From assembly GCF_963921235.1 (NCBI RefSeq), contig NC_086109.1, positions 12,834,001 to 12,898,000 on the forward strand: DNA of 64,000 bases, given 5' to 3'. Below the pieces are notes generated by a model. That model was given only the letters and a program-made list of their open reading frames with translations. It was not told the DNA's origin and did no database searches. Numbering within the stretch: position 1 is the stretch's first letter; the number at the start of each line of letters is the position of its first letter. A program made the position numbers and the translations under genes. Below, piece by piece: positions 8,410-38,968 of the stretch. This stretch comes from Mobula hypostoma. Its lineage: Eukaryota.

Positions 8410-8847
8410 ACAACACTCAACATGGGCTCTTTCTCCTTCCATCATTAACTTTTCACCATGAACCTTTCCCTATTGACGCACCACGGCTAACGTTATAAAT
8501 CAAGCAAAAAATAAATTGAACTTCAGGAGTCAGGTTGTCAACATTTCAGATTAATCCTCTGCTTCAGGACACCTCCAGCCGTTTATTTTGACTTCAGATT
8601 AGAACATTTACTATTGCTTGTGTCTAATATTTTAACATGTCTCAGCACTTCATTCAGTCTTTGAGAATTGTTTACATCTTCCTGTCCTGCTAAATATAAC
8701 TAAAAGCTTTTCAGATTGTCACGTACAACACACCAATTGTGTTACTGTAGTTTTTTTGAGCAAACTTCCTGCTGCCTTCTTCCTTATTTTATTTCAGTCA
8801 TCTCTCTCTGAGGACAGACAGGTCCTGGCTGTGTCTCTGTGATTAAA
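8410..8847 (+). promoter_or_regulatory. Upstream/promoter block of receptor unit 2
   Basis: Paralogous to 910-1669. ETS cores ACTTCCTG (8764-8771) and CTTCCTT (8779-8785) are conserved. The RUNX-equivalent position reads TGTAGTT (8746-8752). Confidence 0.65.
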
Positions 8848-8887
8848 ATGATGTGGACATTGATTCTTCTGATTGGTTTCCTACCTG
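8848..8887 (+). CDS. Exon 1, signal peptide MMWTLILLIGFLP
   Basis: Hydrophobic leader with phase-1 donor GTGAGT at 8888. It joins the V exon as ...FLPVSGALWA. Confidence 0.9.
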
Positions 8888-11800
8888 GTGAGTTACAGAT
8901 AGCACTGGACAACTGCATAATCAGTGTTGGATTGGGGGTCATACAACGTTTCCACAACAATACTTGAACACCTGTAGACACTAAAGATGTCGGAAGCTGG
9001 AGTTCAGACTTCACTCCTGGAGAAACTCAATGGGTCAAGCAGCATCTATCAGGGGGAGGGGAAAAGTCAATGGTTTGGGTCGAGACCCTGCATCACGTGT
9101 GACTGGAGAGGGAGAGGGTGTAAATAGGAGAGAGGGAGGCATGAAACTGGGTCCTCAAGTTAGTCGGGGCTGAGGAGAGGTGAAGCACAACAGGCAAATG
9201 GAATGGGGTGGAAAAGGGATGGTGTTTGGAGGTGGGTGAGAGTGGACGCAGATAAGGAGAAAAGAGGAATAGTGTAGAGCCAGGTGTGGGGAGAATATGT
9301 CCAGCTGGAGAAATATCCTGGAACCTGTTAAACGAGAACGTCAGGTCTACCATTGGTGGAATCTGATCTCAATCTGCAGAGATCACTATGACGATCGACA
9401 TTATGCTCCTGAAATCAGAATTCTTCCTGGGCGACTTCAGTGGTTCAGTTGGCAGAGAAAGTTACCTGATCAGGAGTCTAAGGTAAAGCAGGGTGGTATG
9501 AATGAGAGATTTCTCTCCCTTTATGCCTTTCCAATCCACATGGGATTTTGACACTCTGGCAGTTCATCATTATTATTATTGATACTTGTTTTTTAAATTC
9601 CAGAAATAATAAATTGGATTTTAGCACTCAAAGTATCCCAACAGTTATTGAAATCACACCTGGATTTCTAAACACTAAAGTACTAATGACCACTGTTGCA
9701 CCACTTTCTAACTACACATAGAAATACTTGATAGGTACAATATTTACAACTTGCTTCAGAACCAGAGGGCACAGTTTCAGACATTGTGTGGGGTCTCTTT
9801 CTGCAGTTTATAAACTTGTCTGAATACAAAACCACACACACACACACACAATTGGGAGCATCTTAGATGAAATAGCTGAGACCTTTGTGGACATTTCAAA
9901 GGCCGACATAATCTGTGTAATTGAAAGTTCAACACTGCCACTCTCCCTCTGTACTGCACTGGAAGATCAGCCCTGGGTTTCTGCTCAGGACTCTGGAGTG
10001 GGAATTGAACCCACAAAGTACTGACACAGGGGAGAGAGCACTGACACAGCTGACACAGTAACAGCACTGACTGCACCTCAGACCAAAATCATTGGCTGTG
10101 GTGTCATGGACCACATGCTGTACATGATCTGCACCTGTTTTCACCATCATGTTCAAAAATAATTTTTGCATTAATTTGTTCCTTTCCCTCAATTCTGAAA
10201 ATGCCTCCCTCAGTTTCAGGTGCATTGTGGGCAAAGAAATATGTCAAGGGAGCTGTGGGAAGAGCGATCACAATCGATTGTCACTATCAAGAAATGTACC
10301 ACTCACACACAAAGTATTGGTGCAATGGATATACTGGCCTCTGTTCAGTTTTAGTGAAAACAAATGGGCAACACAGACGGAGTGGACGAGTGTCAATCAC
10401 AGATAACCCGGAACAGAGAAAATTTACAGTTACAATTGAGAATCTTCGCTCTGGAGATACAGGATGGTACAGCTGTGGCATTGAAACACCAGGAGTCGAT
10501 GCAAGATTTAATTTACATCTAAAAGTAAATGATGGTAGGTTTCTCAGTGATTGATTTGTGCCTTCCATAAAATAAATGTCTCATGATCTTTATCCAGACC
10601 CTATCAATCCCTCATTATCTCTGCATTAATATCAGTGCCAAATGTTTCCCACCATACGGCAGGTCACTGAACCCAGTTACAATTTCATTCTCTCCTGAAA
10701 GCCACCAAACATGTGACAGATATCTCCCAAGTTGCTGCCTTTAAACCTCCTGTACATAATAGAGTGGCCACTGAGTGTATGTTCATGGTCTTTTGCTTCT
10801 GTGGCCCATTCACTTCGAGCTTTGATGTGTTGTACTTTCAGATGCTCTTCAGCACACCGCTGTCATAACCCACGGTTATTTGAATTCCTGTCAACTTCCT
10901 CTCAGCATGAACCTGTCTGGCCATTCTCCTCTAACCTCTCTCATTAACAAGGCACTTTTGTTCACAGAATTACTGCTCTCTGGATGTTTTTTCATGCTGT
11001 TCGTACCATTCTCAGTAAACTCTAGAGACAGTTGTGTGTGAAAATCCCAGGAGGTTAGTAGTGCCTTAGATATTTACTACCCCGTCTGGCACCAGCAATA
11101 ATTGCATGGTCAAAGGCACTTAGATCACATTACTTCGGCATTCTGATGTTTGGCCTGAACATTGACTGAAACTCTTGAATATTTCTGCATGCTTTGATGA
11201 GTTGAGTTGCTGATGGTCTGATTGACTAATTAGATATTTGCATTAGTGATCAGGTTAATATTTGTACCTAATAAAGTGGCAGAAGAGTGTATGATATTTA
11301 GATGTTCATTCAGTGTCCGAATGTTTAATTCTTTCCCACAGAACTCGTGTCTGTTCCTGTGCTTCGATATCTGTCACCAGCAAATGTCTCACGCCTCGGG
11401 GGCTCTGTGTCACTTTCCTGTGAGTCTCTCCAGGGATCCCTTCCCATTCAGTACCGATGGTATGAACAAACCTCATCTGAGCAGCTGAAGATCTCAGATA
11501 CCAATAAACTGACTCTACATTGTCAATCCTTCAACCAGCAGCGCTATCAATATTACTGCAGTGCGTCAAATTGGCTTGGAGCAAGGTCCAGTGGAATGGT
11601 TAATGTGACAGTCTCCAACAACGGAGAGATCTGCAGTTACGTGACAGAAATCAATGGCATCAGTAAGTTGTAATTTCAAGGGAGGATACATTTAAATATT
11701 TCTTTTTATTACTCTGTTACTGCTGCTCTTATGCTTCTAGTGAGGGTAAGGAATTTCTTTGCATTTGTAGAAGCTACACATTGCAGCCACCAAGGGGTAG

Positions 11801-14800
11801 ATCTAAAGTGCAATGAACAGTTAAGTCTATCACTTGCTCCAGGAAGATGTGGAGCATCTCAAACATAGTTGGACTTGCACATCTAGACAAATTGAGAATA
11901 TTCCATTCATACTTCTGGCTTTACTTTGAAAAGTCTAGACTAGGTATCGACTTCTGAATCAGTGACATTCTTATAAAAGCAAAAGGAAAGACATAATATT
12001 GCAAATATTAGTGGGAATGACAGCAATTTGGCAATGGCAGGGGCAGGGATGAGTGTCGTTGCTATTACTAAGTAAAACGTGCTTGGGAAGCTGAGGGATC
12101 TGAAAGTAGATGAGTCATTTGGACCAGATGGACTACACCCAAGTTTCTGAAAGAGTTCTATAAAGAAATCGTGGAGGCATTAGTGGTCACCTTTCAAGAA
12201 TAACTAGACTCTGGAATGTTTGAAGGATTAGAAAATTGGAAATATCACCCCATTCCTTAAGAAAGGAGGGAAATAAAAGGAAGGGAATTGTCAAACGGTT
12301 AGCATGACTTCAGTAGTTGAGAAGATGTGGGAGTCTATTATTAAGAACAGGATTTTGGGGTACTTCGAAGTATATGATCAAATATGGTTTCCTTATGGGG
12401 ACATCGTGCCTGAAAAATCAGCCTCAGTATGCAAGGACATCCCTTTATTTTATTTATTTACCGATAGTGTACAGAATAGGCCTTTCCAGCCCTTTGGGCC
12501 ACAACACCGAAGGAACTCTCGACAAATTCAATTAATTGTAATCTGATCACAGGGCAATCTGCAAAGACCAATTACCCTAATGAGTATATCTTTGGACTGT
12601 GGCAGGAAACAGGACCACTCGGGGAGACCCCATACATTCCACACGGAGGATGTGCAGACTCCGTACATTAGAACAGAGATGAGGAGGAATTTCTGTAGCC
12701 AGAGGGTGTTGAATCTGTGGAATTCAATACCATACATGGCTTTTGAGGCCAAGTCACTGGGTATAATTAAAGCGTAGCTTAATAGTTTCTTGTTTAGGAA
12801 AGGCATCAAAGATTACGGGGAGAAATCCCAAGGATAGAATTGAGAGGGATAATAAATCGGCCTTGATGGAATAGTGGAGCAGACTGTATGGGCCAAATTG
12901 CCTAATTCTCTTCCTATGTTTCATGCTCTCATTGTCTTTGTTCACCTCCAGCTTTTGAATATCTGAGCAGCCCAAGTAAATTACTAACTTCTAAAATTGA
13001 GTTTTTGTTTGTTAAATAAAAAACCTCACTCACTTTGAGACATGAGAAGGAAATCCATTCCTTCTGTGAACAAGGCTGCTGCATTTCATGATTACAACAA
13101 GGATAATAAACCTTTAAATCCTTTTTAATCACTGAAGGAATGTCAGTGCAATGCGAGAGATGGGCTGGTGTTCAGCTTTCTGCACAGCAAGATTTACTTG
13201 TCTTTACGCTGAACTGAGTCCGTGGTTGGCAATTAACGGGCTCATGAGTTGGTTACAGTGATGACTGGTTTCTTGACTGTGGCCTCAGTTGTGTGAATTT
13301 CTGTTCCAAATGTTATTTGCTTACTTTGATTCGCTCTTTTTTTCTGTATATTGGGTGTTCTATTTTTTTTATGATTGCCTGGAAGGAGGTGAAACTCAAG
13401 GTTGTATATGGTATAGATTCTTCGATAATAAATGTACTTTGAACTTTGAATTTTCAGACTGAAGTGCAATCTGATTAGCTGTGATCCCATAAGCTGTCAC
13501 ATCTATGTAATGAAATAGAATTCTGAATTTAACATTTCAAAAGCGTGTTCCAGTTTAGAGAGGATGCTGCAGAGTCAGAGAGTTACAGGTTATGAAAACA
13601 GCAGCTTCACCCCAAATTGTCCATGCCGACCACAGTGTCTTCCTGAGCTTCTCCCATTTCCCTGCATTTGGCTGGTATCCTTCTAAAACTTTCCAATATG
13701 AACTTGTCCAAATGTATTTTAAATACTATATGTGTAACCATCTCCAGCACTTCCTCTGACAGCCCTTTCCACGCACACACTGCTCTGTGTGGAAAACCCT
13801 GCTGCTCCAGGCTCTCTAAGAATTTCCCCTCACTCCTTAAGTGAGTGTCTCTAGTTTTCAACTCCCCCACCTGGGATAAAGACAGTGATTATCCACCATA
13901 CCTTTGTCCACAAAACTAAGTAATACAATATAATCCATGTCAAACCACACACAACAAAGACTGACAAAAAACTGATATGCAAAAGATGGGGGCTGCTTGC
14001 TGGCACAGAGCAATGGGGGTGAACACCGGCTCATATTCAAGATCCTAATGTAAACTTACACAACTCTTTCCACTGTCCACCACACTGCAGTGTCACCCAT
14101 AACTTATTATTCATGCCTACACATTCATTCCAAATTATTAATATTACTGACAAACAACAGTTGTTAATAATCTTGAAACTTGAGCCTGCTTGTGTAAATT
14201 TGATTTTACCTGTCCATTTTCTGAAGATTTTCTCCCTCAGTTTCAGGTGCTTTATGGGCAGAAGCTAAAGTAAGAGGAGTTGTGGGAAGAGCGGTCACAA
14301 TCGATTGTCACTATGCACCAATGTACCGTTCACACACAAAGTATTTGTGCCGCATGTGGGATCGTCAATGCACATCGTCAGTGAACACAAATGGGACAAA
14401 TGAGCAGTATGGAAGAATGACAATCAGAGATAACACATCCCAGGGAATATTTACTGTTACTATGGAGAATCTTGTCTCTAATGATACAGGACTTTACAGA
14501 TGTGGAATTACAACACCTGGCAATCATCCAGTGTTTGATGTGCATCTCCAAGTATCTGATGGTAGGTTTCTCATTGATTGACTTGATGGCTCCACTGAAA
14601 TATCTGATTCAGGTTTGCTCTGGGAAGAGTCAGGGCAGCAGGAATATCCTGAGGCTCCACAGCAGTGCAGAGCCCTGTGGCGAGTGTGCAAAATGGGGAG
14701 ACCTCACTCATAATTCTCTCACCCACTGTGAGTTCTGATCCACTGTTGGGATACTGGTTTCCAGTGGAAGGCTCAGTGTATTTTCCTGCTTCTGAATTCC

Positions 14801-17800
14801 ATGAAACGTCACCCTGTTAAAGGAGGAGATGTTTGCTATCCTGAGGCAAATCAGTGTGAGTATATCCCCAAGGCCTGCTAACGTGTTATCTTGGACCTCA
14901 CGGGAGGCAAGTGCAGAAATTACCGGGGCCCTGGCAGACTTAATTAAAATATTCTTAGTGACTATGATGCTTAGTGCAGGGATTGGTGCTGGGTCTGTTG
15001 TTGTTTGCATCTGTATCAGTGATCTGGATGATAATGTGGCAAACTGGATCAGCAAATTTCCAGGTGACACCAAGATTGTGTGTGTATTGCACAGTAAGGA
15101 AGGCGATCACGGCTTGCAGAGAGATCAACAACAGATTGTAAAATGGGCTGAAAAATGACAGATGGAATTTAATGCAGACAAGAGTGAGGTTTTGCCCTTC
15201 AGTAGGACCAACCAGGGTAGGTCTTAAACAGCGAATGGTAGGGCACTGAGGAGTGTGGTAGAGCAAAGCAAAGACTGGTCCATAATATTTGTAGGTTGCG
15301 TAAGAGTTAGATAGGGCTGTAAAGAAAGCTTTTGGCACATTGTCCTTCATAAATTAATGTATTGAGTACAAGAGATGGAATGTTATGTTGAAGGTGTATA
15401 ACATATTGCTGAGGCCAAAGTTAGAGTATTTTGTGCAGTTTTGGTCACCTATCTGCAGGAGAGATATAAATAAGGTTGAAAAACTACAGACAAACTTTAC
15501 AAGTATGTTGCCAGTTGTAGAGGACCTTAGCTATCAGGAAAGAGTGACTAGGTTATGCCTGTGTTACTTACAATGTAGAAGCTTGAGAGGGCATTTGATA
15601 GAGTGCACAAAATTATGAGGGGTATAGAAAGGGCAAATGGAAGCAGGCTTTTCCCACCGAGGTTGGGTGGGACAACAACCAGAGGTCATGGGTTAAAAGT
15701 AAAAGGTGAGAAGTTTAAGGGAAGCATGAGGGAAACTTCTTCAATCAGCAGAACTTAAGAGTGAGGAATGAGCTGTCAGCTGTCAGTCATTGGGTATATT
15801 GAAAACAGGATTTCATAGGTTCTTGATTAGTAAGGGCATCAAAGCATACAGGGAGAAGGCAGGAGAATAGATTTGTTGGGATAATAAATCAGCCATGATG
15901 GAATGGTGGAGCAGACTCAATGGACAGAATGGCCTAATTCTGCTCCTATGTTTCATGGTATTATGGTCTATGATCTCACATGATTCCTTGTTGGCTTCAT
16001 ATCGGTATCAGTACATATAATGGGTTCTCTCGCTGCTGTAGATCACTGAAACCAAATCACAATTATACTCTGTCCTTAAAGTCACCATTCATTTTGTACA
16101 TATCTGACAATTTCCTGTTTTCAAATTATGGTGAGTTTTCCAGGACGCACACAATGTTGCCATTCCAAAGTCACATTACTAGGTATCACTTAAGACTGTC
16201 TCCTTGCTGCTGAGAGACTGAAGCCCAGATTTTCACTCAGTGTCATCACTGTTGTTCTGATCAGGAATCCTGCTGTTTTCAGGGATACTGACAGACATGG
16301 AAGTTCAGGCAGATGTGAGGATGCAGAGACAGAGTGGAGTAGATGAGCTGCTGAGATTCCAAACTTGTGGGTTCTGGTTGAGACACAAAACTGCTGAAAT
16401 CTTCAGTGTGATTGATCTTCAGAAGTTTGCTGATTTTTGGCCATAGAACCCTGTGCTATGTCTGTTCCTTTGCTTTGATCTTCACCACCAAAAAGCGGCT
16501 CAAGTTGTGCGGACTCCGTGTCAGTGTCCTGTGAGTCCGTCCATGGATCCCTTCCCATTCAGTACTCATGGTATGAAAAGACTCCATCTGTGGATTTAAA
16601 TACATCTGATACCAATAAACTGGAGCTACATTGTCAATCCATAAAATAATGTATTATTGCAAAGCTTCAAATGTTAATGGAACAACGTACAGTGAAGTGG
16701 TCAGTGTGTCCATCTCCAGCAGTGTCAGCACCTGCAGAAATGTGATTGAAGTCAACAGCACGGGTAAGTGGTGCAGGGTTTGATTCTTTACGATGGTTGA
16801 TGGAGTACAACTGAATGACTGATGCCTGTTGGATATTGTGTTGTTGGAACTTCACTCAGGAGCATGGAGTGTATGTTGTCACCACCTTTCAGAGAATGAA
16901 AAACCTTTCGGCACAGCAGTTCAAATGTGAGTCTCTCAGCACAGTGTCTCCTGTCTCCGATCTTCTTTCGCTGGCTGACTGTGAATGTGTCACAGCTGCT
17001 AATATTTCTGGCCATTTGTTAAGACAGTCCTTCCAAGAAAAAAATCACTCAAAATTCAAAGTAAATTTATATCAAAGTACACATGTGTCACCATACACTA
17101 CCCTGAGATTCATTTTCTTGCAAGCATTCAAGTAGATACCAATAAATAAAACAGAATCAATGAAAAACAACACATCGAAGATGGACAAATAACCAATGTG
17201 CAAAAGATGACATACTGTGCAAATACAAAAGAAACAAATTAGTAATAAGTAAATAAATAAATAATATTGAGAACATAGGTTGTAGAGTCCTTGCAAATGA
17301 GTCCATAGTTTGTGGAATCGGTTCACTGTTGAAGTGAGTGAAGTTATCCACACTGGTTTAGGAGCCTGATTGTTGAAGGGTAATAACTGTTTCTGAACCT
17401 GGTGTTGTGGCAGTAGCATGAAGAAAGCATGGCCTGGATGGTAGCAGTCCCTGATGATGGATGCTGTTTTCTCGTGGCAGAGCTCCTTGGAGACTTTTAT
17501 CCATATTTGCTCTGCCTGAATTTATAAACAATTATCTGTGCTGCATTTGAGAGAAAATGGGCTGAGTCATAAAATTAAAGGAGATTTATCTTGATGAAAA
17601 GTACAGAAATCACATGGATCGTGAATGTCTGTGTCCTAAAAACAACATATGACCACACAAAAAAGAAGAACTGTGTATTCTCATTCACTGAGTCTCCATG
17701 CAAAAGCGAAGACAGATTGAGCCCAAGTGAATTCTATGGGTGAGCAGTTTCAAGGACAGAAACATTATTGGAGCGGGTAGGGTTAAATTGGAAACATTCA

Positions 17801-20800
17801 ACCACTAAACCACTGGGGGCTTGGATGAGTTGAATTCTGTCTATTTCCCCAATTCAGTGAATTGAAAATAATTGGGTAAAAAATTTAGTGACACTTAGAC
17901 TGTGGAATAACAGGAATATAGATAATTATCTGGATAGCAATAGAATAGAAAATGGAGGAATATTATGAGTTTTGGGTGTCCTTGTACATCTTTCACTGAA
18001 GGTATACTTGCAGATGCAGCAAGACATAAAGAATGCAAATTGTATTCAGACTTGCAGAGAGAAGATTCGCATAAAGGAACAAGAATGAAACACTGCAATG
18101 ATACAGGGAACAAATTTCAAAGTATATTTATTATTAAAGTATCTGTACCGTATACAACCTTGAAATTCATCTCCTTACGGGCAGCCATAACACAAAGAAA
18201 CCTAATAGAACCTATCAAAAAAAGAACATCAAACACTCAATGTGCAAAAAAAATACTAATCAATCAAATACTAATAGTAAGCAAATAACATTCAGGACTG
18301 AAGTCCACAGCCATGAAGCCAAGCAAGCCGATCTAGGAGCCCGTTAGTTGCTGGCCACAGCCTCAACTCAGCGCAGTGATGGCTAAACCTTGTGGAGCAG
18401 TTAGCCTCACATCAGCCCGTCCCTCTTGTCCAGCCCTGACACCCTGAACTTTTCAATCTGGTCCAGTGCTTTAACCAGCCAAACAGAAAGTCATTCCTCA
18501 CACTCACACTCAGGCCCTGCTGCTTCGATATGCTCTCATGCTCGGGACCCGCCGACTCAATTCGGCTCGTACCCAATATTTCCACTCAGGCCTGAAGTTT
18601 AAATCGGTCAGACACCAACTTGATCCTCACTCTCGGGCCACCAATATTGTGTGCATGATTTGGTCCGATGAAAGATGTTCCTGTTATGGAAGGAGGTGAA
18701 CAAAGGAACAAGTGACATTAGATCAGAGATTTGGTTGATAAGGTTTTTATTTACTGGAGTTTAGAAGGCTGAGAGGTGATGTCATAGAAATGTGCAATAT
18801 TTTAACAGGGTGATACTGGTGTAGATAGGATGCTTCCAATGCCAGGGAATACAGGATAGGCATGGAGTCTTAGAATAATCTGGAGATGCCTACTGATTGT
18901 TGATGGAGTACTGTAACAGCTTTTTGTGTCTGCTCCTATATTACTTACTTTGCTGTTTCCAAGCTGTTTTGAAATCTTACTTGAAAACATAACATTGTTT
19001 TATTATGAGGGGTGCCAAAGGTAAAAAAGAAGAGGACTCTCCTGCAACTTTGGAATCTATTATGGAGACACTTCGGAAACATAAAAAAGTATTTTCAGAG
19101 GAGTTCCAGCAGAAGTTCCAGCAGCTCAGCGCTGAAATTAAACAAATTGATGTAAAATTGGACTCTATTCAAAAAACCTTAATTGAACATGATAAACGAT
19201 TACAGGAGAATGAAGATACTCTGACGATTTTAGATGCGAAAATTGAAGACCTGCAACAGCTTTGTGAAAAACAGTCAAAGTCTAATGAAAAATTAAGACA
19301 GAAGATTATCAACATAGAAAACAGAAGTAGAAGAAATAATCTACGAATTCTGGGTCTTGAAGAGTTAATGGAAGGTAATCAGCCTATGGAATCCTTTGCA
19401 AACTTCTTGGCAAAATTATTTCCTAAAATTTTAAAATCTCCACCTTAAATTGATCAAACCCATAGATCACCCGTGCCCAGACCTGTCGAGGGAGAAAGAT
19501 CCCGACCAGCGATAATCTGTTTCATGATTTTCAAACAAAAGAACTTTTAATTCGTGAATTCCATTGAAGAGGTATGATTGATTACAACGGCCAGAAGATC
19601 AGAATTGTTGAGGATTTTTCACCTGAGGTGGTGAATGAGCACTTCAAGTTTAAACAGGTTATGTCGGAACTGTATAACAAAGGTTTCAAGCCATCTCTCT
19701 GTTACCCTGCTCGGCTCAGAATTATTTTGAGGAATGGTTCTCAGAAATGGCTCCGTTCAATACAAGACGCTCAAGAGTTTTTTTAGAATCAGGAGACTAA
19801 CTGTTTAATATCTTCCTACATGAATAATTGCTTCTTTTACTTTTGGTATACCTTTGCAGCTAACTCTCTTTTTGAACTCTTCAATGCTTTACTTAAAAAA
19901 TAAGATTTTAATGAGATAATACCTTGAGTGTTAATATGTTTTGAACTTTGATAGTTTTTTTTAAATATTATATATTATACATTTTTGAGGTTTTTCCTTT
20001 CAATAAGGTTTAGTTGCTTTGTCTCATGAGTTGTCTAGGTTGGAATGCAGTTAATCTTGGAAAATGATTTGGACCTATACTTTTGGGAAAGTAATGTCAT
20101 TAGGTTTAGCTGTCGACTGACTATTGGTCGGCTTTTTGACTTTGGGTGGGGGGCGGGGTGTTTTCTTTTCTGTAAGCTGTTTTGGTCACTTAGCCACACT
20201 TGTTGCCTGGTTACCCTATCTCAAAGTTCATTGTTTGGATTTAATATACATTCCAGTGGTTACTATTCTAACCTTTCTTTTAAGTAGTATTAAGAATGGA
20301 TCATACTATTAATTTACTTAGTTTTAACGTAAATGGATTAAACTACCCCGTAAAACGGAATGAGATATTTACCTACATTAAAAAATTTAAGGTCCCAATT
20401 ATTTTTTTACAAGAAACTCACGTTCGTAAATATGACAACTTATGCATCTTTAGTCGTTGGAAAAGATAACAATTTCATTCCTACTTTCAGGATAAGTCGA
20501 GGGGATTTTGATTTTTATAGATACAGTTTCTTTTGTTCAACATAAAGTACCAATGGGCATTTGGTTATAGTATCAGGAAAATTAGATAATAAATTAATGG
20601 CACTTGCTAATGTGTATGTCCCGAATATAGATGATCCAGGGTTTTTTTGAGTGTTTTTTTTTGCTTTTGCCAGATTTAAGTCTTTACCCACTGGTCTTGG
20701 GCAGAGATTTTAATTGCTGGTTAGACCCAGTTTTAGATTGATCATCTTCCAAACCAGCGACACTTAGTAAATCAGCCTTGTTTATTCAATCTTTTCTAAT

Positions 20801-23800
20801 GACATATGATATTATTGATGTCTGGCATTTCTTACATCCAATAGATAAGGAGTACTCGTTTTTTTCCCATATCCAACATAAGTATTCCAGGATTGATTAT
20901 TTTTTATTGATTGCCCAATGATTCCATCAGTTTGATGCTGTGAATATAAAGAGATTGCTGTCTCAGATCATGCTCCTGTGTTTTTATCTTTCAATCTCCC
21001 TCGTCTCCCTCAAATAAACAGATTTTGGCATTTTAATCCAACTTTGCTATCAGATAAGGATTTTTTAAAAAATTGGAGAGACAAATTACTCTTTTTTTTG
21101 AAGAGAATACACAGGAAAAGACTTCTAGTCTTATTATATGGGATGCCCTTAAGGCTTATATTAGAGGACAAATTATTTTTTATACTGCAAATGTTAAGCA
21201 AAAAGCTAATAAAGAGAGAATTGAAGTAGCTAATCAGTTGAAACAATTAGATCAGAAATACGCCTTGGCTCCAGAACCCGCTTTATATCAAAGGCGTGTT
21301 GAAATTTAAACTAAATATGATCTTCTTTTAACATAGCCAATTGAAACTCAACTCCTAAAAGATAAAAGTCAATTTTATATTCATGGAGGCAAAACAGGTA
21401 AATTATTGGCTAACCAATTAAAAACATTTATAGCTAAATGGCAAATTAAAGAAATTCGTAAAGCCAATGGTGATAGGACAACTGATCATTTAGATATAAA
21501 TGATAGCTTTAGAGAATTTTATTCTAAACTTTATAGTTCTGATCTTCCTAAAGATAATACTGTTATGAATAATTTCTTAGATCAATTAAACATCCCTACA
21601 CTTTCTGATGATAACCGAAAACAGTTTGATCTACCTATTTCTTATGAGGAAATGGCCGAGGCTGTATGTTCATTGCACTCGGGGAAGGCTCTGGATCTGA
21701 TGGATTTTCCGGAGAATTTTATAAGGCTTTTTTCCTCATTGGTTATACCTCACATATATTCAGTCCTCCTGGACTACTTTAAGTTGGGTAGCTTGCCACA
21801 ATCTTTTTATGCAGCTTCTGTTTAACTTATTCTTAAAAAGAATAAGAACCCAACTGAATGCTCTTCGTATAGACCAATCTCCTTACTTATTGTTGACACT
21901 AAAATCCTATCCAAAGTTTTGGCTCACAGGATTGAAAATATTTTACCATCTATCATTTGGATTTCTTAAAAATTGATATTCCCACTTTAATATTCGTCAT
22001 TTATTAAATGTTATTTAATCTTCTTCTAAAGAGATATCAGAATGTACAATATCCTTAGATGCTGAGAAATCTTTTGATCAGGTTGAATGGAATTATTTAT
22101 TTAAAACCTCAGAAAAATTTAATTTTGGGCCCAATTTTATTCGATGGATTCAGTTACTTTATTTATTTCCCTCTGCTCGAGTTCTTACTAACTCTCAGAA
22201 TTCCAAAACATTTAAACTTCAACATGGAACATGGAAGGTTGTCCTTTGAGTCCCTTGCTTTTTGATCTGGCCTTAGAACCCTTAGCTATTGCTTTTTGAG
22301 AATCTAATCATATCACTGGTATTTTAAGGAGAGGTACTATTCACAAAGTTTTGCTTTATGCTGACAATCTATTGCTTTATATTTCTAATGCTGAGACTTC
22401 AGTACCTTCCGTGCTTTCCTTGCTCTCTTGTTTTGGTCAGTTTTCAGGATATAAATTAAACTTTCATAAAAGTGAACATTTTCCTTTGAATAATTTGGTA
22501 TCAATTAATACTAATCTTCCTTTTGAATTTGTAAAAATTCAATTTACTTATTTAGCTGTAACAATTACCAGGAACTATAAATATTTATTTAAAGCAAATT
22601 TTTTTACCCTACTGAATTATATAAAAAGGGCACTATCAAAATGGTCGCCCCTTTCATTATTGTTGATTGGCCAAATTAATTCTATTAAAATGAATATCTT
22701 GCCTAAATTTTTATCTTTTTCAGGCCTTATCTGTTTTTATTCCTAAATCCTTCTTTGATTCTTTTGATTCTACATATCTTCATATATATGGAAAAATAAA
22801 CTTTCTTAACTAAATAAAGTTCATCTTCAAAAAGCTAACAAGAATGGAGGTTTAGCTTTCCCAAATTTTAGGTTTTATTACTGGGCAGTCAATATACGGA
22901 ACCTCACATTTTGGTCATATTATGTTAACCCAGAGGACTGTTCGGTTTGGGTTTCTTTAGAAGCTACCTCTGTTAATAAATTTTCTATAATTTCTCTTCT
23001 CGGATCCTCAATTCCTTTATTTTTAAGTAAACTAACTGATAGTTAGGTACAATTTAGAAAATATTTTGGTTTATTGAGATTTTCTCTTTCAAGTCCCATT
23101 TTTACTAACTTTTTTTTAAACCTTCTATGACTGATGTATTTTTCAAAGATTGGGATAGACTGGGTATTAAATGCTTCTAGGATTTGTTCGTGGAGAAATT
23201 CACTTTCCGTTTGAGCAGTTGTCAGCTAAATATAGCTTAACAAAAATCCACCTTTTTCGATATTTACAAATTAGAGACTTCCTGCGATCTCAATTACATA
23301 CATTTCTTTAAAATCCCGATAAGAATTTATTAGATGTAATTTTTTAATTTGAAACCTTTTCATAATGGATCAATATCTAATATTTATGGTATATTGTTGG
23401 GAATGAGAAATGCCCCTTTACACAAAATTTAAAATCTCTGGGAACAAGACTTACAGACTTCAATTTCTGACGAAACTTGGAATGAAATTTTTAAATTGGT
23501 TAATACCTCATCATTGTGCCTGTCATTCCCTCCTACAGTTTAGTGGTTCATAGGGCCCACATGACTAAAGATAAGCGGTCTCTTTTTTATTCAGATATAT
23601 GTCCCTATTGTGACAGATTAACAATGGAGAAGCTTCATTAATTCATATGTTCTGGACATGCCCGAGTCTTGAAAAATATTGGAAGGAAGTGTTCCAAACT
23701 TCTTCTGTACTTTTCAAAGTAAATTTTAAACCTAACCCTTTGACTGACTTATTTGGAGGAAAATATATCATCTTGGAGACACCTGATTTGCACATTTTGG

Positions 23801-26800
23801 CTTTTATTTCTCTTATAGCTGGGAGGGTATTGTTGCTTAAGTGGAAGGATGTTGCTCCGCCTACACATGTTCAATGGATAAGTGATGTTATGTCGTGCCC
23901 AAATTTAGACAAGATTCATTGTTCAATTTCTGAATCTAGACAAGACTTTCTAACATTGTGGGGACCCTTTTTGAATTATTTTCAAAATCTTTGACTTGTT
24001 ATTATGTACAGATGTTGGCCAATAATATGTTTTATATATGATAAGGATTTTTTTCCTTTTTTCTTTCTTTACCAAACAGCTTTTCTTGGTAGTGTGTTTA
24101 GATTTTTTTGTATAATAAAATTATTACTTTTCAATATTACAATTTAATTTAATTTACATGAATACAGGGTAATGAGACTATAAGTGTGATTAAATATATT
24201 GCAATTGATATAATATATATCCTCCCGTACTCTGTATTCTTTTATGTAAGAAATCAATACAAATATTGAAAAAGAAAAAAATAATCTATAAGGGTGAGCC
24301 ATTTAAGACTGGGAATAGGGAAGACTTCTTCCCTCTGAAAGTGGAGAACCCTGTATTCACGAAAGATTTAGTTGTTTTTCTCAGAGGTAGAGAGATCAAA
24401 AAAATATGGGAGAGAATTATCTCCCAGAAATACTGGATATCACAGGGTTTATTGAAAGACAGAAAGCAGGTAATCACCAATAATAGTGGAAAGGTGTTGG
24501 GAATACTGATATGGGAGAAAACCAATAAATCTCCAGGTTCTGATACTCTACATCCCAGATAACATAAGGAATTGGCATTGGGAAAATATAGATGCATTGC
24601 TGGTCCTTTTTAATTCCAATGGATTGGAGAGAAGATCACTACTCTATTTTTAAAAGGAGGTGGAGAGAAAAGAAGAAATTACAGATCAATTAACCTGACA
24701 TTGGTATCAGGAAATGCGGTGAAGAAGGACAAAACCAAAACCAATGTATTGAATTGGTCTTGAGTTTCTTTGCACCCATTATAAATTTCCCCATTTCTGT
24801 CTGTTAGATATCCTATATTTGTTTTAATTAACCTTCTGTTCACATACGTATTGAAGTTTTCACATAGGTACATATGTTTCCGGCAAACTTGCTCACTTTC
24901 TATATTTTCAGTGTTTTAATCAATTACTTTGTTTTCTTTTAACTTCTAAAATACTTCTAATACTCAGCATTGCTGCTTTTACTGAACATGGCACATTTCC
25001 CTGGATCTAATAGGTTCACAAATTTCTTTTGAAAGTCGTGCTTGATAGTCTAAAAGCTCGAAGGGGGTCTCTTTAATGCATAAAGTATTCCCTGAGGAAT
25101 AGATGGAGCTCATGTTGAAAGGGATGTTTCACAGGCTGCAGGGTCCGGACTGGGGACAATTACAGGAGAACATTGATCATCATTTCATTCTTATACTTAG
25201 ATCTATTACTCTGTGCAGTTTAAGCAAATGTTTCAAAAATGAAAAGCTTTATTCAAATATCTGAGTGCTCGCTGGCGGAGTGGAAAGTTTTCCTCCAACA
25301 AGAGAATCACAGAAATCCTATACGTACATAGAAAATCGTTATCAATATTTTATGACAGCTTCTGAGAATGGTTGAGGTTTCCGTCACACAAAGTCATACT
25401 GGGGTTCGAGGATGGGAATGAGTGGACAACATAAAATTGGTGTACGTTCTGATATATGTGCAACAAATAAATCTCACCTTTAATCATTAAAAGTGTATTA
25501 AATAACAGATCACCTTTGGTCTACCGTGCTCAAATACCTATTGGTCTTACAACTCTGCTCTCTTGGTTTTGCAAGTACAAAGCAGATGAAATTGAATTTC
25601 ATACTCTTTTAACAGGGTCAAATCATTTCAGTGAAAATACTGTGACAAAATCAAAGACAAGTACACAAAGGTAAGAAACTATTTCACCTCAAACGTAAAG
25701 TATAAGGTTCTCTCTACAGGAGGTTTCACTGCGACTGTTTCCAAATATATTCAGTGGGAGAGAAATTTGTTTCTCTTTAACTGGATTTACACTTGTTTGA
25801 CATGATTAACTTCAATGAAATGATGTATTGGAAACTGAATATTCCTGATTTTATTGTACAGGCATCAAGCCTGAAAACAAATATAATTTTCTTAACCTAA
25901 ATATTTAATAATTTAAGTATAGCAGTTGAAGCTCATGTTCTGAGTCATAAAGTCATTGTTATATATTAGAACAACAGGCTCTTCAGCCTGACTCGTCCAA
26001 GCCAAACAAGAGTCCAGACAGCCACGAAACGAAGAAAACCATGGGGGCCGTTCCAAGAACAGGTTCGGTTACATGGTCAGCAATGGTGTCTGTCAGAGAA
26101 GAAACTGCCAATCAAACCCATTGTGCAACAGTTCTGATGAAATGTTTGCAAAGGAATATGGTAGGGTTCCCAAATGGCCTGGACAATCGTTACTCTCTAA
26201 CCAACATCACTATCATTGGTCATGGTCACATTTCTGCTTGTGAGACCTTGCTGTGAGCAGATTGGCTGCTGCAATTTCCCACAGTCAACAGTGTCTAATG
26301 TTCACTTTCTGAGCTGCAGACATCCTGAGCTCATGAAAAATGCTGTGTAAGTGTCAGACTTTACAAATGGCCAAGAATAAGTGGTGAACCAGGACTGACC
26401 TTTTCCTATTCTTTACCACAGACACACTTACATGATTGTGCTCAGTATCATTGGAATTCTTCTCATACTACTTGTCGTTTGTCTCCTTTGCTACCTGAAG
26501 AGAAAAAACAGGGGTAGGTTTTGTTTTTGCTTTCATTATTTCATGATGAAAATGATAGCAACTGCTGAATCTGAAGGAACGTGATTCGGTTGCAGTCAAC
26601 AAAAAGCCAGGTTTAGAGTGCTGATGTGTTGGTTTACAACACATGAATGAATGGTGTTGCTCTCACTGTAACATGGTGACTCCATTATTCCTGAAACATC
26701 AGGTGATGGAATCTCACATCAACTGTGGAATGGCAGAGAACCAAGAGTTTGGGTAGGAGAAAGATTTAGATGGTCTCGCCTGTTGTTCTCAGTTTTGGGA

Positions 26801-29800
26801 AATTAACTGTTGTACAGTATTTGAAAGTGTATTCAATAAGCTGTTCCTCAGTACAACCCCCAATTAAATGCAATCGTTTGGACAATGTATGTGTAAAATC
26901 ATACTCACATGCAATTCTCCAATTAAAGATCAGGTGTATCTTTTACCAATCTATCACTCACTACATATCACTGGAGAAACTTCCCTGCTCTTATTGGAAA
27001 AGTTGCTGTAGATTAACTTATAGTCTGCTTTGTTGAGATGATCCTGAGATGGGCACCACGGTAGCGTAGAGGTTAGTGTGACGTGATTACTCCTCGGGGT
27101 ATTTTGGAGTTTGGAGTTCAATTCCGGTGAAATTCAGTAAGGAGTCTCTACGTCCTCACCATCGAGTGTGTAGGCTTTCCCGGGGTGTTCTATATCTTTC
27201 CCACAGCCCAAAGACGTACCAGGTATGTTATTTGGTCATTGTAAATTGTCCCATGATTAGGTTAAGGTTAATCACGTTTGTCAGGGTTGCTGGGTCAGCA
27301 TGGCTCAAAGGGCCAGAAGGGCCTACTCTGTGATCTATAAATAAATAAATGAGTAATCTTGTGTCCCTTCAATAGACTTTGTATACCAGTAAAGAGAGCT
27401 GTGAGTACAGTGATCTTCTGTGTGTTATTATCAGATGGGGAAATTGAGTTGATCACTGGAAAATAAAGCCCCTGCAGCCTCATAACTCATTGGCTGAAAA
27501 TTATAACAATTAATAATTCAACTGCTCCCCGTGATGTATTTCCTGGCTTCTCTCTCTCTCCAACAAACCAGACAGTTACTTTCAGCCTTGTATTATCGCC
27601 AAGTCACTGTTTGTTGCATAGATCTGAACAGAAGGAATGCATTCTTTTCCAAAGGAGAAATTCCCTAAAAGTTCAATACCTGAGATACAGGCAGAAAAGT
27701 GCTCGGAATGCTCAGCATGTCAGATGGCAGCTGTGGAGAGAGGAACAGCTGATCCTTCAAGGCAACGGTCTTGCATCAGAACTGGAAAATGTGAGCAATA
27801 ACGAGTCTCGAGGTGCAGAGGAAGCACGGAAGCAAGCACAAAAAAGTGCGATTCTGATAGAGTACAAGACAGAAAAAAACACTAGAAAAGAAGATGTGTG
27901 AGGCAAAAGGTGGGTGGTAATAGGATTAATGAAGAATTAAAGATGAGCGGGCTTTGAAATTTGATATCTTCATTGGTGACATTATCCTCATCAGTAACAG
28001 AGTGTACTGCTCTTGATTTCCCTTGACATTTCTCTTTATATTGTTAACTACTATTAATAAAAAAAATGAGACGGGCTTTGGGAAGTAAAATCTGTTCACA
28101 ACTCAACTTCCACTGTTCTGCTCCTCACTCAGGAGTTTTCCCTGTTTTCTTAAGGTAGTCAGACAGGTAAACTCCAGTCCAGGTGTAGTTGTAGTCTGAA
28201 GGCAGTTCTATTGTCCAGCAACACATTACAGTGAGCCAGGAGCTCAGTAAGCAAAATGACAGTGTTTCTAGATGATCTCACAAGAGATGGATTTAAATAT
28301 TATTATAAATTCATTTGACTCGTAACAAAGTGTTTCTGAATGAAAAAATATACAAATGATTATAAAATGGCTGACCTGATGTCGAAGGTCAATTGCTTAG
28401 AAACACAGTTGTAAGGAATGAAAAACAGCTGCAAACTTACAAGTAAGCACTGATATCTAGTGGCTAGAAATAAAATAGCAAACCATATCGGCGGGGACAT
28501 AACATCCACTAATAGTCTCAGGTCATCAAAACCATTTATTGAGAATGGAACATTCAGATTCTGTATGACCCCAGGGTGAGACAACAGATTAAATTGTTGA
28601 TCTCAGTGTTGAATTTGAAAGGTGGTTTTATGGTCAGTTGGAAAATGAGGTGATTTTTATTTTGGGCAGTTTGTTCCTTCTGTCTGAGGGACAATCTTCC
28701 ACAGAGCCCTGGAGAGATAATGAGAATTTTGTCAGATAATCTGCTCCACCATATTGTGAAGGAGAAATCTGATCTAAAAGCACACACAGACAATGTAGAA
28801 AACGCTTGGTAGATCAGACAGAATTTTTAACAATGAAAAACAATTAAAATGTCAAATCCAAAACCGTCATTACACTGTACAAAGATGGTAAACATTAGTT
28901 TTCAGTAGCAGAGAAGGTGGTGGGGGGGTTGTAAAAGCTATGATCCTTTCTGAACATTGTGTAGTAACCAGAGCAGAGGTTTGCTCTGTGTGGAGAATCA
29001 TTACTGTGTTGCAGCTGGGGTTCCCGTGGTTCTGAGATTCAGTATGGGTGTCATGGTAACCTAGCGGTTCAGGTGAAGCTATTACAGCTCGGGGCGTTCT
29101 GGAGTTTGCAGTTCAATTCCAGAGCTGTTCTGAAAGGAGTCTCTGTATGTCCTCCCTGTGGGATGCATGGATACACTCCGGGTCCTCCAGTGTCCTCCCA
29201 CAGTCCAAAAACGTACCAGGTAGGTGAATTGGTCAATGGAAATTGTCGCATGATTAGGATAGGATTAATCTGGTTTGTCGGGGGTTGTTGGGGTGGCGAA
29301 GCTCAAAGGGCTGCTGGGGCCGACTCTGTGCTGTATCAATCAATCAATAAATACATATTCATGTCTGTGCTCCCCTCATGGAATTTTTAGCAGTAATGTT
29401 GTATTTTCCAGAATCGAAGCACAACACATCTCACGGAGAAGGCAACAATGAAATCCAGGTACGGACATGAAGTATAAAGTGTCTGAATGTTTCAGAATGT
29501 TTAACAATTGGATTACATAGGAGTTTACAGATCATTCATTCCCCCCCCCCCCGCCACCAGTCCATTCCAGTATTATTTTACACAAACCTCTGAACACCGC
29601 TCTCACTGAATCCCATCAGCCTATCTTTCCAGTTATTTGTCCCTTGCTCTCATGCTCATCCAGATTTTCCTTCAGTCTATCCATAATATTTTGCGTGACT
29701 ATTCTTCAAAGTGGCTCCAGGCCTGATTATCATTACCAAATGGTGAAAAGCGAGGTTGGTCCTTTCTCTACTGTTAGAGATCGAGTGTCTAATTGTCTAA

Positions 29801-31899
29801 ATCTGTCTTTGGGTTTAATAATTTACCAGTTTACATTTTGTGTAATCCGTCTGAGTCTCAAACTCTGATGTGAAGTCAGAAAAATAGGCAAGTCTATTCA
29901 GAAGAATAAACTGGGGATGGCACACTGGCATAGCGGTTTGCGTAATGCTGTTACAGCGCCAGCAACCTACATTCACCGTGGCTGCTGTCTGTATGTTCTC
30001 CCCATGACTGTGTGGATCTCATCTGGGTGCGCCCATTTCCTCCCACATACCAAAGTCCGTTACTTTGGTCACATGGGTTTAATTGGGTAGTATGGGTTTG
30101 TTTGGCCAGAATGGCCTGTTACCATGTGGTATATCTAAATAAGTAAATATCTGTTCTGTGCTGACCTCACCCACCCAACTTTCTCACTCTACCCCTCAAT
30201 CCTGACACCAGTATGAATATTCTATTGTCTATTCGGTCTGTTATAAACAACATTTTTTGTGATATTTTCCACAGTTTTCAGAATGTTTGTTTATTATTAT
30301 CTTCTTCATTAAAATCCCAATTGATTTAACTTTGTCCTAATTGAATAATTAGGGTCAATGTTATCAAAGAGATTCAATTGTTCTCTCAACTTCATCAGTT
30401 GCTTTTCACTTTCTCAAAGGTAACTGCAGGGTGGGGATTGTTGAAGGATTCTGCTCTGCCGTACATTTTCCCTTGTTGGCATCACTTCCCCTCCAAGAGC
30501 TGTACCCTCAGAAAACTGTGTGTTCCTCTTGTGCATCCTCCAGTCTCTGAGTCCTACCACCAATGTCAGTAGCTTCAGCTGCCCAAATCCCACATACTAG
30601 ACAAATCCCACAAATCCATGAACTCCTGCAATTCTGTCCTCTTAACTTTTGTTTGTTAGAGATACAGCAGAGTAACCGGTCCTTCCGACCCACGAACCAC
30701 TCAATTACACCCATGTGCTCAATTAACCTGCTACAACAAACCATTTAGACTGTAAACCCTAAAAGTATTGTAATTTACCCAAATAATTCTCAAGTTAACA
30801 TAGAGCATAGAACATAGAATAGTACAGCACATTACAGGCCCTTCAGCCCACAATGTTGTGCCAACCCTCAAACCCTGCCTCCCATATAACCCCCCACCTT
30901 AAATTCCTCCATATACCTGTCTAGTAGTCTCTTAAAATTCACTAGTGTAACTGCCTCCACCACTGACTCAGGCAGTGCATTCCACGCACCAACCACTCTC
31001 TGAGTAAAAAACCTTCTCCAATATCCCCCTTGAACTTCCCACCCCTTACCTTAAAGCCATGTCCTCTTGTATTGAGCAGTGGTGCCCTGGGGAAGAGGCG
31101 CTGGCTATCCACTCTATCTATTCCTCTTATTATCTTGTACACCTCTATCATGTCTCCTGTCATCCCCCTTCTCTCCAAAGAGTAAAAGCCCTAGCTCAAG
31201 TTCATTTTCAACCTCTTCTCTTGCTAAACTCTGTGAAACACCTTCGAGCAGTTTAGTGTGTTGGTGTTGTAAAGCAACATGCTGTTGTTGCCCAGTTAGT
31301 AGTGGGTCCGGACTAAGGATTACAGCCACTGAGTCATAAAATGTTATCAAACATTCTGGAAAATTATATTCTACAAGCTGATTGAATGAATCAGGGTTTA
31401 TTTAAAGAGAGGAAACTGAAGGTGTTCTGGAAGATGTCTGCAAGAGTATCAAATTGTTTTATAGAGTAGTGAATATGTTTCCACTTAAAGTTGAGAATAG
31501 AACTCTAGCTATAAACATAAGATAATTTTTTTTTAAATCCAGCAACTCAAAACCATAGATCAGAAAGCAAGGAGCCTTCTCCCTGCAACCTTTCATGCCT
31601 CACCTTCCACATTCACCAACCAGACAACAGATCTTGGAATTGATTTATCTTCTCAGGAAACGGCCACGTTGGAAGAAAACATCGTTTATGCAGATCTACA
31701 CCATTATCAAAACAATGAGGCAGCTGCCCAGTCGGCTAACAATGAAAATGGAACTGTGTATGCAAACATGAAATTTAAAAGGAAGTCACGAGCAGGACAC
31801 TCTGTTATGGATGAGGACAACGCCACCTATGCAGATATCAAATTTCAAAGCCAACCCACAAAGCCCAGACGGAAAGCTTTCTCTCCTGGTACTCCATAG
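8848..31899 (+). CDS. CD300/pIgR-like (MDIR-type) inhibitory Ig-superfamily receptor gene, spliced, L-V-C2-V-stalk-TM-cytoplasmic, 479 aa predicted
   Basis: Exons 8848-8887, 10214-10534, 11342-11662, 14241-14561, 25616-25670, 26422-26513, 29412-29458 and 31657-31899 all have GT/AG boundaries and matching phases (1,1,1,1,2,1,0). They total 1440 nt with no internal stop. Confidence 0.85.
10214..10534 (+). CDS. Ig V-type domain 1 (CD300/pIgR-like)
   Basis: TIDCHY...KYWC...C...GRVSITDN...FTVTIENLRSGDTGWYSCG, with the extra Cys pair typical of CD300/pIgR V domains. Acceptor CCTCAG at 10213 and donor GTAGGT at 10535; 321 nt. Confidence 0.95.
10640..11290. mobile_element. Tc1-type MITE relics in the V1-C2 intron
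   Basis: TIR ends GTGGCCACTGAGTGTA (~10764-10779) and GTACCTAATAAAGTGGC (~11265-11281). Internal sequence is shared with 480-910. Confidence 0.55.
11342..11662 (+). CDS. Ig C2-type domain 1
   Basis: VSLSCESLQGSLPIQYRWY...YQYYCSASNWLG. Acceptor CCACAG at 11341 and donor GTAAGT at 11663; 321 nt, phase 1/1. Confidence 0.93.
12060..12900 (+). mobile_element. CR1 LINE fragments with a nested antisense SINE piece
   Basis: CR1 ORF2-like segment (SLTSVVEKMWESIIK) and CR1 3' UTR (RTEMRRNFCSQRVLNLWNS). Confidence 0.65.
14241..14561 (+). CDS. Ig V-type domain 2 (duplicate of V1)
   Basis: SGALWAEAKVRGVVGRAVTIDCHY...KYLC...DTGLYRCG. Same 321-nt length and splice context (CCTCAGTTTCAGG / GATG|GTAGGT) as V1. 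The frame is open. Confidence 0.9.
14720..15975 (+). mobile_element. CR1 LINE 3' portion (RT C-terminus and tail)
   Basis: ...ISDLDDNVANWISKFPGDTK... and LLRPKLEYFVQFWSP motifs, ending in a TATGGTC-type tail repeat. Confidence 0.8.
16447..16763 (+). pseudogene. Disabled second Ig C2 exon
   Basis: Paralog of 11342-11662 (VSVSCESVHGSLPIQYSWY...YYCKASN). It has TGA at 16476-16478 where C2-1 has CGA, and a 10-nt deletion/frameshift at ~16641-16651. Acceptor CATAG (16446) and donor GTAAGT (16764) are still present. Confidence 0.9.
19005..19786 (+). pseudogene. L1 ORF1p (coiled coil, RRM, CTD), disrupted
   Basis: Heptad-rich N-terminus, ENRSRRNNLRILGL RRM start and GQKIRIVEDFSPEV CTD, split by a stop/frameshift. 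Confidence 0.88.
20296..23994 (+). pseudogene. L1 ORF2p (APE endonuclease, RT, C-terminal CCHC), multiply disrupted
   Basis: LLSFNVNGLN...LQETH, SDHAPV, YRPISLL, SLDAEKSFD, LYADN and HMFWTCP motifs distributed over several frames. Confidence 0.88.
25616..25670 (+). CDS. Stalk exon (G)SNHFSENTVTKSKTSTQ(R)
   Basis: Acceptor TTTTAACAG and donor GTAAGA; 55 nt, Ser/Thr-rich. Phase 1 in and phase 2 out, exactly matching the TM exon. Confidence 0.8.
26422..26513 (+). CDS. Transmembrane exon HTYMIVLSIIGILLILLVVCLLCYLKRKNR
   Basis: About 21 hydrophobic residues with no charged residue, followed by the KRKNR stop-transfer. Acceptor CCACAG and donor GTAGGT at 26514. Confidence 0.9.
27051..27350 (+). 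mobile_element. tRNA-derived SINE (HE1-like)
   Basis: A-box-like TAGCGTAGAGGTTA, B-box GGAGTTCAATTCC, a central domain shared with 29046-29345 and 29908-30140, and an (ATAA)n tail. Confidence 0.7.
29046..29350 (+). mobile_element. tRNA-derived SINE (HE1-like), second copy
   Basis: B-box GCAGTTCAATTCC, CCCACAGTCCAAAAACGTACCAGGTAGG central motif and (ATCA)n tail. Confidence 0.65.
29412..29458 (+). CDS. Cytoplasmic exon 1 (E)SKHNTSHGEGNNEIQ
   Basis: Acceptor TTTTCCAG and donor GTACGG; 47 nt. Phase 1 in and phase 0 out, bridging the TM exon and the last exon. Confidence 0.75.
30795..31200 (-). mobile_element. CR1 LINE 3' end (antisense)
   Basis: (CATAGAA)n tail. The minus ORF 30942-31178, MERRGMTGDMIEVYKIIRGIDRVD..., is the typical CR1 ORF2 C-terminus. 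Confidence 0.85.
31657..31899 (+). CDS. Terminal cytoplasmic exon with IVYADL, TVYANM and ATYADI tyrosine motifs
   Basis: Acceptor TCTTCTCAG; the ORF ends in TAG at 31897-31899. Motifs lie at 31681-31698, 31753-31770 and 31822-31839. Confidence 0.88.
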   Translation, partial: ETATLEENIVYADLHHYQNNEAAAQSANNENGTVYANMKFKRKSRAGHSVMDEDNATYADIKFQSQPTKPRRKAFSPGTP

Positions 31900-38760: not shown

Positions 38761-38968
38761 GCTGACCCTCTCCTCATTGCTATCATCAAGAAGATGTTAC
38801 AAAAGCCTGAAAACAAACACTCAATGTTTCAGAAACAGTTTCAATCCTTCCACCAGCAGACTTCTAAACGGACAGTGCATTCATGAACATCCCCTCACTA
38901 TTTTTCCTGTCTTTTTGCATTGCTTATATACAGTATAGTAATTTATGTTTTTTATTATGTATATCAAT

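Follow-up and report, generated by a model that had tools for sequence, protein, structure and literature searches.

A predicted MDIR-family receptor gene with a degenerate fourth immunoglobulin exon in Mobula hypostoma

The window analysed here is a stretch of 64,000 nucleotides of Mobula hypostoma DNA (NCBI RefSeq assembly GCF_963921235.1, contig NC_086109.1, positions 12,834,001 to 12,898,000 of the forward strand), and its subject is a gene for an immunoglobulin (Ig) domain-containing membrane receptor that occupies window positions 8848-31899 of the + strand. The window contains no N runs, and its sequence is vertebrate DNA. Three-frame translation and a tblastn comparison of the window with itself revealed, all on the + strand, two V-type Ig exons, an intact and a broken copy of a C2 exon, a transmembrane (TM) exon, and a tyrosine-rich last exon. 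With exons 1-4 and the start of exon 5 fixed as read from the sequence and the combinations of AG/GT boundaries tried for exons 5-8, a single set of eight exons was obtained, in which all introns are of the GT-AG type (Table 1). The spliced product has 479 residues in the order leader-V1-C2-V2-stalk-TM-tail, the tail bearing an immunoreceptor tyrosine-based inhibitory motif (ITIM). Its translation is identical at 479 of 479 residues to P0183, named 'polymeric immunoglobulin receptor-like [Mobula hypostoma]' by NCBI. The P0183 gene call in GCA_963921235.1 spans 23,052 nt, i.e. 31899-8848+1, with no further gene called up to 10 kb away in either direction. An earlier interpretation made from the letters of the window, referred to below as the sequence-only reading, had proposed this phase-compatible eight-exon model with Ig exons of equal length and symmetric phase, and it was correct in every detail; the observation rebuilds an existing automated annotation from raw sequence.

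Table 1. Exons and pseudoexon of the receptor gene (window positions)
Feature	Position	Strand	Evidence
Leader exon, 40 nt, MMWTLILLIGFLP plus 1 nt	8848..8887	+	Donor GTGAGT, phase 1 out; 100% identity to P0183 residues 1-13
V1 exon, 321 nt, phase 1/1, pIgR/CD300-type V-set	10214..10534	+	Four Cys (IDC, YWC, GLC, YSC)
C2a exon, 321 nt, phase 1/1, FCRL-like C2/Ig_3 domain	11342..11662	+	FCRL5 match; tree position among non-terminal C2 domains
V2 exon, 321 nt, phase 1/1, internal-type V, here membrane-adjacent	14241..14561	+	Pfam; clade of 34 internal V domains (support 100)
psi-C2b pseudoexon, 317 nt	16447..16763	+	AG acceptor, GTAAGT donor; TGA at 16476-16478; skipped in annotated mRNA
Stalk exon, 55 nt, GSNHFSENTVTKSKTSTQ, phase 1 in / phase 2 out	25616..25670	+	Homologous to the stalk of P0017 and P0162
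TM exon, 92 nt, YMIVLSIIGILLILLVVCLLCYL, no charged residue, then KRKNR stop-transfer	26422..26513	+	
Short cytoplasmic exon, 47 nt, ESKHNTSHGEGNNEIQ	29412..29458	+	
Last exon, 243 nt including stop, tail with IVYADL (canonical ITIM), TVYANM, and ATYADI	31657..31899	+	

In Pfam, V1 and V2 were assigned to the V-set (E = 1.8e-15 and 2.4e-12, respectively), and C2 (hereafter C2a) to Ig_3 (8.2e-08) and also to Ig_2. When compared with solved structures in PDB, V1 matched all five domains of the polymeric immunoglobulin receptor (pIgR; whole chain, E = 1.7e-49), CD300A (2q87; 2.5e-19), chains of CD300F (CLM-1; ~3e-16), and also NKp44, TIM proteins, and TREM2, and C2a matched FCRL5 (2e-41). For the type of each domain, the matches to solved pIgR, CD300, and FCRL5 domains are decisive. 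Four cysteines are present in V2 as in V1, and the four of V1 stand in contexts typical of the pIgR/CD300 V subtype. In the cytoplasmic tail, IVYADL fits the strict ITIM consensus, (I/V/L/S)xYxx(I/V/L), and TVYANM and ATYADI are degenerate; all three tyrosine positions are conserved in relatives from rays, skates, and sharks, in which the second and third motifs are often canonical (IVYANV and VTYADI). The inhibitory character suggested by the sequence-only reading is thus supported by the uncharged TM segment and the IVYADL motif, together with the two ITIM-like motifs, and the natural reading of the predicted product would be an inhibitory receptor of the type I membrane class. V1 is the most divergent part of the protein, its best non-self match being 82% identical (versus 87.5% for C2a, 91.5% for V2, and 88% for the tail), as would be expected if the domain farthest from the membrane, which presumably binds the ligand, has diversified.

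When V1 was searched against the whole library with phmmer, 2666 matches were obtained, 140 of them below 1e-30, and many of the top ones contain repeated V matches. Word-indexed searches with P0017 and P0183 gave more than 100 proteins of elasmobranchs and chimaera, with matches in Mobula, Hemitrygon, Hypanus, Pristis, skates, many sharks, and Callorhinchus. When the exons of the window gene were mapped onto these family proteins, a (V-C2)n plan emerged, ranging from V-C2 up to V-C2-C2-V-C2-V-C2-V-C2-V-C2 (P0001, 1254 aa), and the stalk, TM segment, and tail also match in many of them. P0183 matched the skate MDIRs over their full length, i.e. MDIR3 (P0176; E = 1.5e-224), MDIR5 (P0202; 5.9e-186), and MDIR2 (P0232; 2.3e-103), and more than 100 elasmobranch paralogues likewise gave full-length matches, which bears out the kinship to skate MDIRs put forward earlier. 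All features by which MDIRs are recognized were found, i.e. full-length similarity, a modular Ig ectodomain, a type I protein with an ITIM tail, and a multigene family, the M. hypostoma paralogues being P0151, P0152, P0194, and P0044. By its sequence, the gene is classified as a member of the elasmobranch MDIR family, combining V domains of pIgR/CD300 type with a C2 domain of FCRL type. NCBI names within this family vary (mostly pIgR-like, Fc receptor-like 5 (FCRL5), or CMRF35-like, but also CXADR-like and A33-like), and the name pIgR-like reflects domain similarity rather than orthology.

CD300A and CD300F are also ITIM receptors, and the V domains of the window gene share with CD300/CMRF35 proteins the extra C-C' disulfide cysteines (KYWC...C); however, CD300 proteins have a single V domain, whereas the window gene encodes three Ig domains, one of which is C2-type. 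The pIgR consists of V-like domains only and has a transcytosis tail, whereas an FCRL5-like C2 domain (Pfam Ig_3) lies in the middle of the window protein, whose ITIM-type tail motifs would argue for signalling rather than transcytosis. MDIRs were reportedly described by Cannon and co-workers in 2006 (Immunogenetics 58:362) from the clearnose skate Rostroraja eglanteria. Skate MDIR2, MDIR3, and MDIR5 resemble the window gene in having pIgR/CD300-like V domains and C2 families, modular domain order, type I TM topology, ITIM-type tails, and multigene organization. Per-domain identity between them and the window gene is 54-67%, and their domain orders are V-C2 (MDIR2), V-V-C2-V-C2 (MDIR3), and V-C2-V-C2 (MDIR5), compared with V-C2-V in the window gene. 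Unlike the skate MDIRs, the window gene places a V domain beside the membrane, because its last C2 exon is dead. Full-text literature searches for MDIR gave PMC3031540 alone, in which the 2006 skate paper is cited, and a wider search for CD300, pIgR, and elasmobranchs gave nothing relevant.

The exons could in principle belong to two genes, an L-V1-C2 gene with a secreted product followed by a V2-stalk-TM-tail gene with a leader of its own that has escaped notice. The C2-to-V2 intron is 2.6 kb long, and V2 starts with SGALWA, as does V1 after the leader; however, internal V domains start in this way throughout the family. A tblastn search of the window with the leader peptide (word size 2, E up to 10) found copies at 8848 and 1670 only, none of the 253 family proteins matched anywhere between 11793 and 14204 in that intron, and no leader-like, TM-like, or extra tail exon was found between 11662 and 14241. 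In addition, the NCBI models of four species join the V-C2 and V2 exons. A separate pair of genes is thus very improbable, and the single-gene interpretation of the sequence-only reading stands, since the separate V2 leader that would contradict it was looked for and no second leader lies between C2 and V2.

The copy at 1670 is an intact-looking second leader exon (MWSSILLITFLP plus G, donor GTGAGT; 1670-1706, +), situated 7 kb upstream of the real leader. It lies within a longer copy of promoter-proximal and leader sequence (1578-1953 versus 8753-9135, 75% identical), and no V exon follows this upstream copy. Possible explanations are that it is an alternative first exon or that it remains from a gene copy since lost.

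V1 and V2 share 57% of their residues and, at the DNA level, 74.7% of their nucleotides (10193-10558 versus 14219-14585), and C2a is 70% identical at the DNA level to the second, broken C2 copy, psi-C2b (11348-11671 versus 16459-16772). These matches indicate that the V-C2 pair is present twice. In both comparisons, similarity ends ~20 nt beyond the exons, and the introns no longer align, from which an old duplication is deduced. In domain trees, V1 is placed among first-position V domains, and V2 falls into a clade of 34 V domains (SH-aLRT 100), all from proteins of myliobatiform rays and none of them in first position. Similarly, the intact C2a groups with non-terminal C2 domains, apart from the broken copy, which belongs to an 18-member clade of membrane-proximal C2 domains (SH-aLRT 99). 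With moderate support, the same pair of V types and pair of C2 types is recognised in proteins of Pristis and skates, and in sharks and chimaera a protein's own domains cluster with each other. Across 100+ proteins, (V-C2)n orders are made up of domains of V1, V2, C2a, and C2b type. The trees thus indicate that the V1-C2a-V2-C2b unit predates the divergence of the sampled ray families and was not created in the window gene, and the basic unit of the family in rays is one of four symmetric phase-1 exons that arose by an old V-C2 duplication.

The sequence-only reading had placed a V-C2 duplication inside this gene, and the domain-level tree that it called for separates the two parts of this claim: the module duplication is real, but it is older than the gene, the V1/V2 and C2a/C2b lineages being common to many ray genes. 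A recent duplication in the window gene itself, creating a new architecture, would account for the still recognisable pairs (~75% nucleotide identity for V1/V2 and 70% for C2/psi-C2b). However, similarity limited to exons beside unalignable introns speaks against it, as does the grouping of V2 and psi-C2b with same-position domains of other genes and species instead of with their own V1 and C2a, and we give it hardly any credence. The argument had leaned on the start of V2, which was taken for the end of a signal peptide carried along by the duplication. The first residues are (I)SGALWA in the V2 exon and (V)SGALWA in the V1 exon, and the exact SGALWA start occurs in 22 first-position and 41 internal V domains of the family, in addition to many variants, so that it is a family-wide trait of first and internal V exons. 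Because SGALWA aligns to residues 1-7 of mature pIgR D1, it may largely represent the first residues of the A strand in the mature domain and not a signal-peptide relic.

The three intact Ig exons of the earlier domain model were confirmed; the model had left out a fourth, dead Ig exon, psi-C2b, between V2 and the stalk. This pseudoexon is 4 nt shorter than an intact Ig exon and contains a frameshift near 16646, and its in-frame TGA stands where intact relatives have Q or R. Outside these lesions, its in-frame blocks are 74-84% identical at the amino acid level to the intact C2b domains of P0017, P0151, P0152, P0162, and P0172, and both splice sites are retained. In the annotated mRNA, V2 is spliced straight to the stalk, which places V2 near the membrane on a stalk of 18 residues. 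Exon death thus appears to have turned V-C2-V-C2 into V-C2-V, the sole unusual feature of the gene as judged from its sequence.

The retained splice sites also allow a different interpretation, in which psi-C2b is normally spliced in and its TGA ends the protein ten residues past V2, so that the transcript is a target of nonsense-mediated decay (NMD), as expected for a non-functional or down-regulated gene, or the product is a secreted V-C2-V decoy. The M. birostris model P0010, in which the homologous exon is represented by its 3' half, is compatible with this, as is a possible second lesion in the form of an out-of-frame relic just upstream of the TM exon, although the resemblance is weak. 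This stretch (SGEPGLTFSYSLPQ, 26376-26421, +) directly precedes the TM-exon acceptor and contains 'GEPGLTF', which weakly resembles the pre-TM segments GGEPTSHK of P0162 and GEESTSFK of P0017; as a faint hint, it suggests that the TM exon may once have been longer. Decay or a poison exon is nevertheless unlikely: the NCBI model skips psi-C2b to give an uninterrupted open reading frame (ORF) of 479 codons with all other exons intact, two dasyatid species have full-length V-C2-V models (478 and 479 aa, 78% identity), and the tail motifs and the TM segment are conserved. We regard as similarly doubtful the idea that psi-C2b has been kept as a switch, whose inclusion would bring a stop ten codons past V2 and lead to down-regulation by NMD or to a secreted V-C2-V decoy, and, with it, the further possibility that the membrane-proximal C2 has been lost repeatedly in ray MDIR genes, leaving a V domain adjoining the membrane.

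The L-V-C2-V-stalk-TM-tail layout is also annotated in Hypanus sabinus (P0185, 479 aa) and Hemitrygon akajei (P0186, 478 aa). Both proteins are 78% identical to the window gene product over 100% of its length, have the same short stalk/TM junction, and share its three tail tyrosine motifs. A V-C2-V ectodomain was also found in a skate protein (P0224, in which no TM or tail was matched) and in M. birostris P0010. The suggestion in the sequence-only reading that this exact architecture may be undescribed is therefore not sustained: the 479-aa model is an existing NCBI protein, and V-C2-V models are known from at least three further batoids. Databases already contain this architecture, and the locus is an automatically annotated addition to a known receptor family. 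A tree built from 320 ectodomain columns to place the window gene among its possible orthologues was a polytomy, and none of the orthology groupings was rejected in approximately unbiased (AU) tests (p = 0.34, 0.13, and 0.36), a joint clade with P0185 and P0186 giving p = 0.34.

In the P0010 model, the 3' half of the homologous pseudoexon is read into ORF1 of a long interspersed nuclear element (LINE) that is 95% identical to window positions 19020-19373, and this splice into the homologous ORF1 is probably an annotation chimera. The 11-kb V2-to-stalk intron of the window gene contains an AT-rich LINE (~19005-24000, +), in which a coiled-coil ORF1 (19005-19448) is followed by broken ORFs, including P0010-matching stretches.

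Since all intact Ig exons have the same length and phase, skipping of single cassettes can yield shorter in-frame isoforms, as the sequence-only reading had calculated, and its arithmetic was right. Predicted isoform pairs in relatives appear to behave in this manner. In H. akajei, P0186 (V-C2-V) and P0205 (V-C2, the 371-aa isoform X2) have identical stalk, TM, and tail sequences, and the pairs P0194/P0044 of M. hypostoma and P0200/P0221 of M. birostris represent V-C2-V-C2 versus V-C2-C2 with common domains identical. P0164 and P0196 of L. erinacea differ by one V-C2 pair.

Taken together, these results make it very probable that the locus is a single M. hypostoma gene for a type I receptor of the MDIR family, comprising V1, C2a, V2, an 18-residue stalk, an uncharged TM segment, and a tail with one canonical ITIM and two ITIM-like motifs, and that C2b is dead and skipped in the annotated mRNA. 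Several points weigh against this conclusion. The 479-aa NCBI model is an automated prediction; psi-C2b, with its good splice sites, may enter some or most transcripts, in which the protein would be truncated after V2; of the three tyrosine motifs in the tail, a single one conforms to the strict ITIM consensus; and ligand and signalling are ascribed to the putative receptor from family resemblance alone. If the product acts as its relatives suggest, V1, the most divergent domain, would bind ligand, Src-family kinases would phosphorylate the ITIM tyrosines, and the phosphorylated motifs would recruit the phosphatases SHP-1, SHP-2, or SHIP, by which activating signals in leukocytes would be damped.

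Other features of the window include an inverted 83-nt relic of the last exon in the intron between the TM and short cytoplasmic exons (27950-28032, -), which is 84% identical to 31770-31852, spans the third tyrosine motif, and indicates an earlier rearrangement. The direct repeat 27049-27350/29044-29348 was checked for a further copy of the short cytoplasmic exon, and none is present there. Downstream of the gene, a CR1-like LINE (36449-41312, +) encodes a GDSL-esterase ORF, an endonuclease (Exo_endo_phos), and a reverse transcriptase (RT). Two inverted gag-bearing copies of gypsy/Ty3 type (43960-45613, +, and 52711-54499, -) share 1.7 kb at 72.7% identity, and an RT-RNaseH fragment (51410-52084) lies alongside them.

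Beyond annotation, the finding matters little. The NCBI label 'pIgR-like' conceals what is read here as an inhibitory receptor of the MDIR family, and the analysis puts on record that ray MDIR genes have a unit of four exons, V1-C2a-V2-C2b. The gene also illustrates clearly how a receptor with Ig exons that are symmetric and of phase 1 can lose a domain, by exon death and skipping, without loss of the gene, and its description may help in cataloguing the clusters of innate immune receptors in elasmobranchs.

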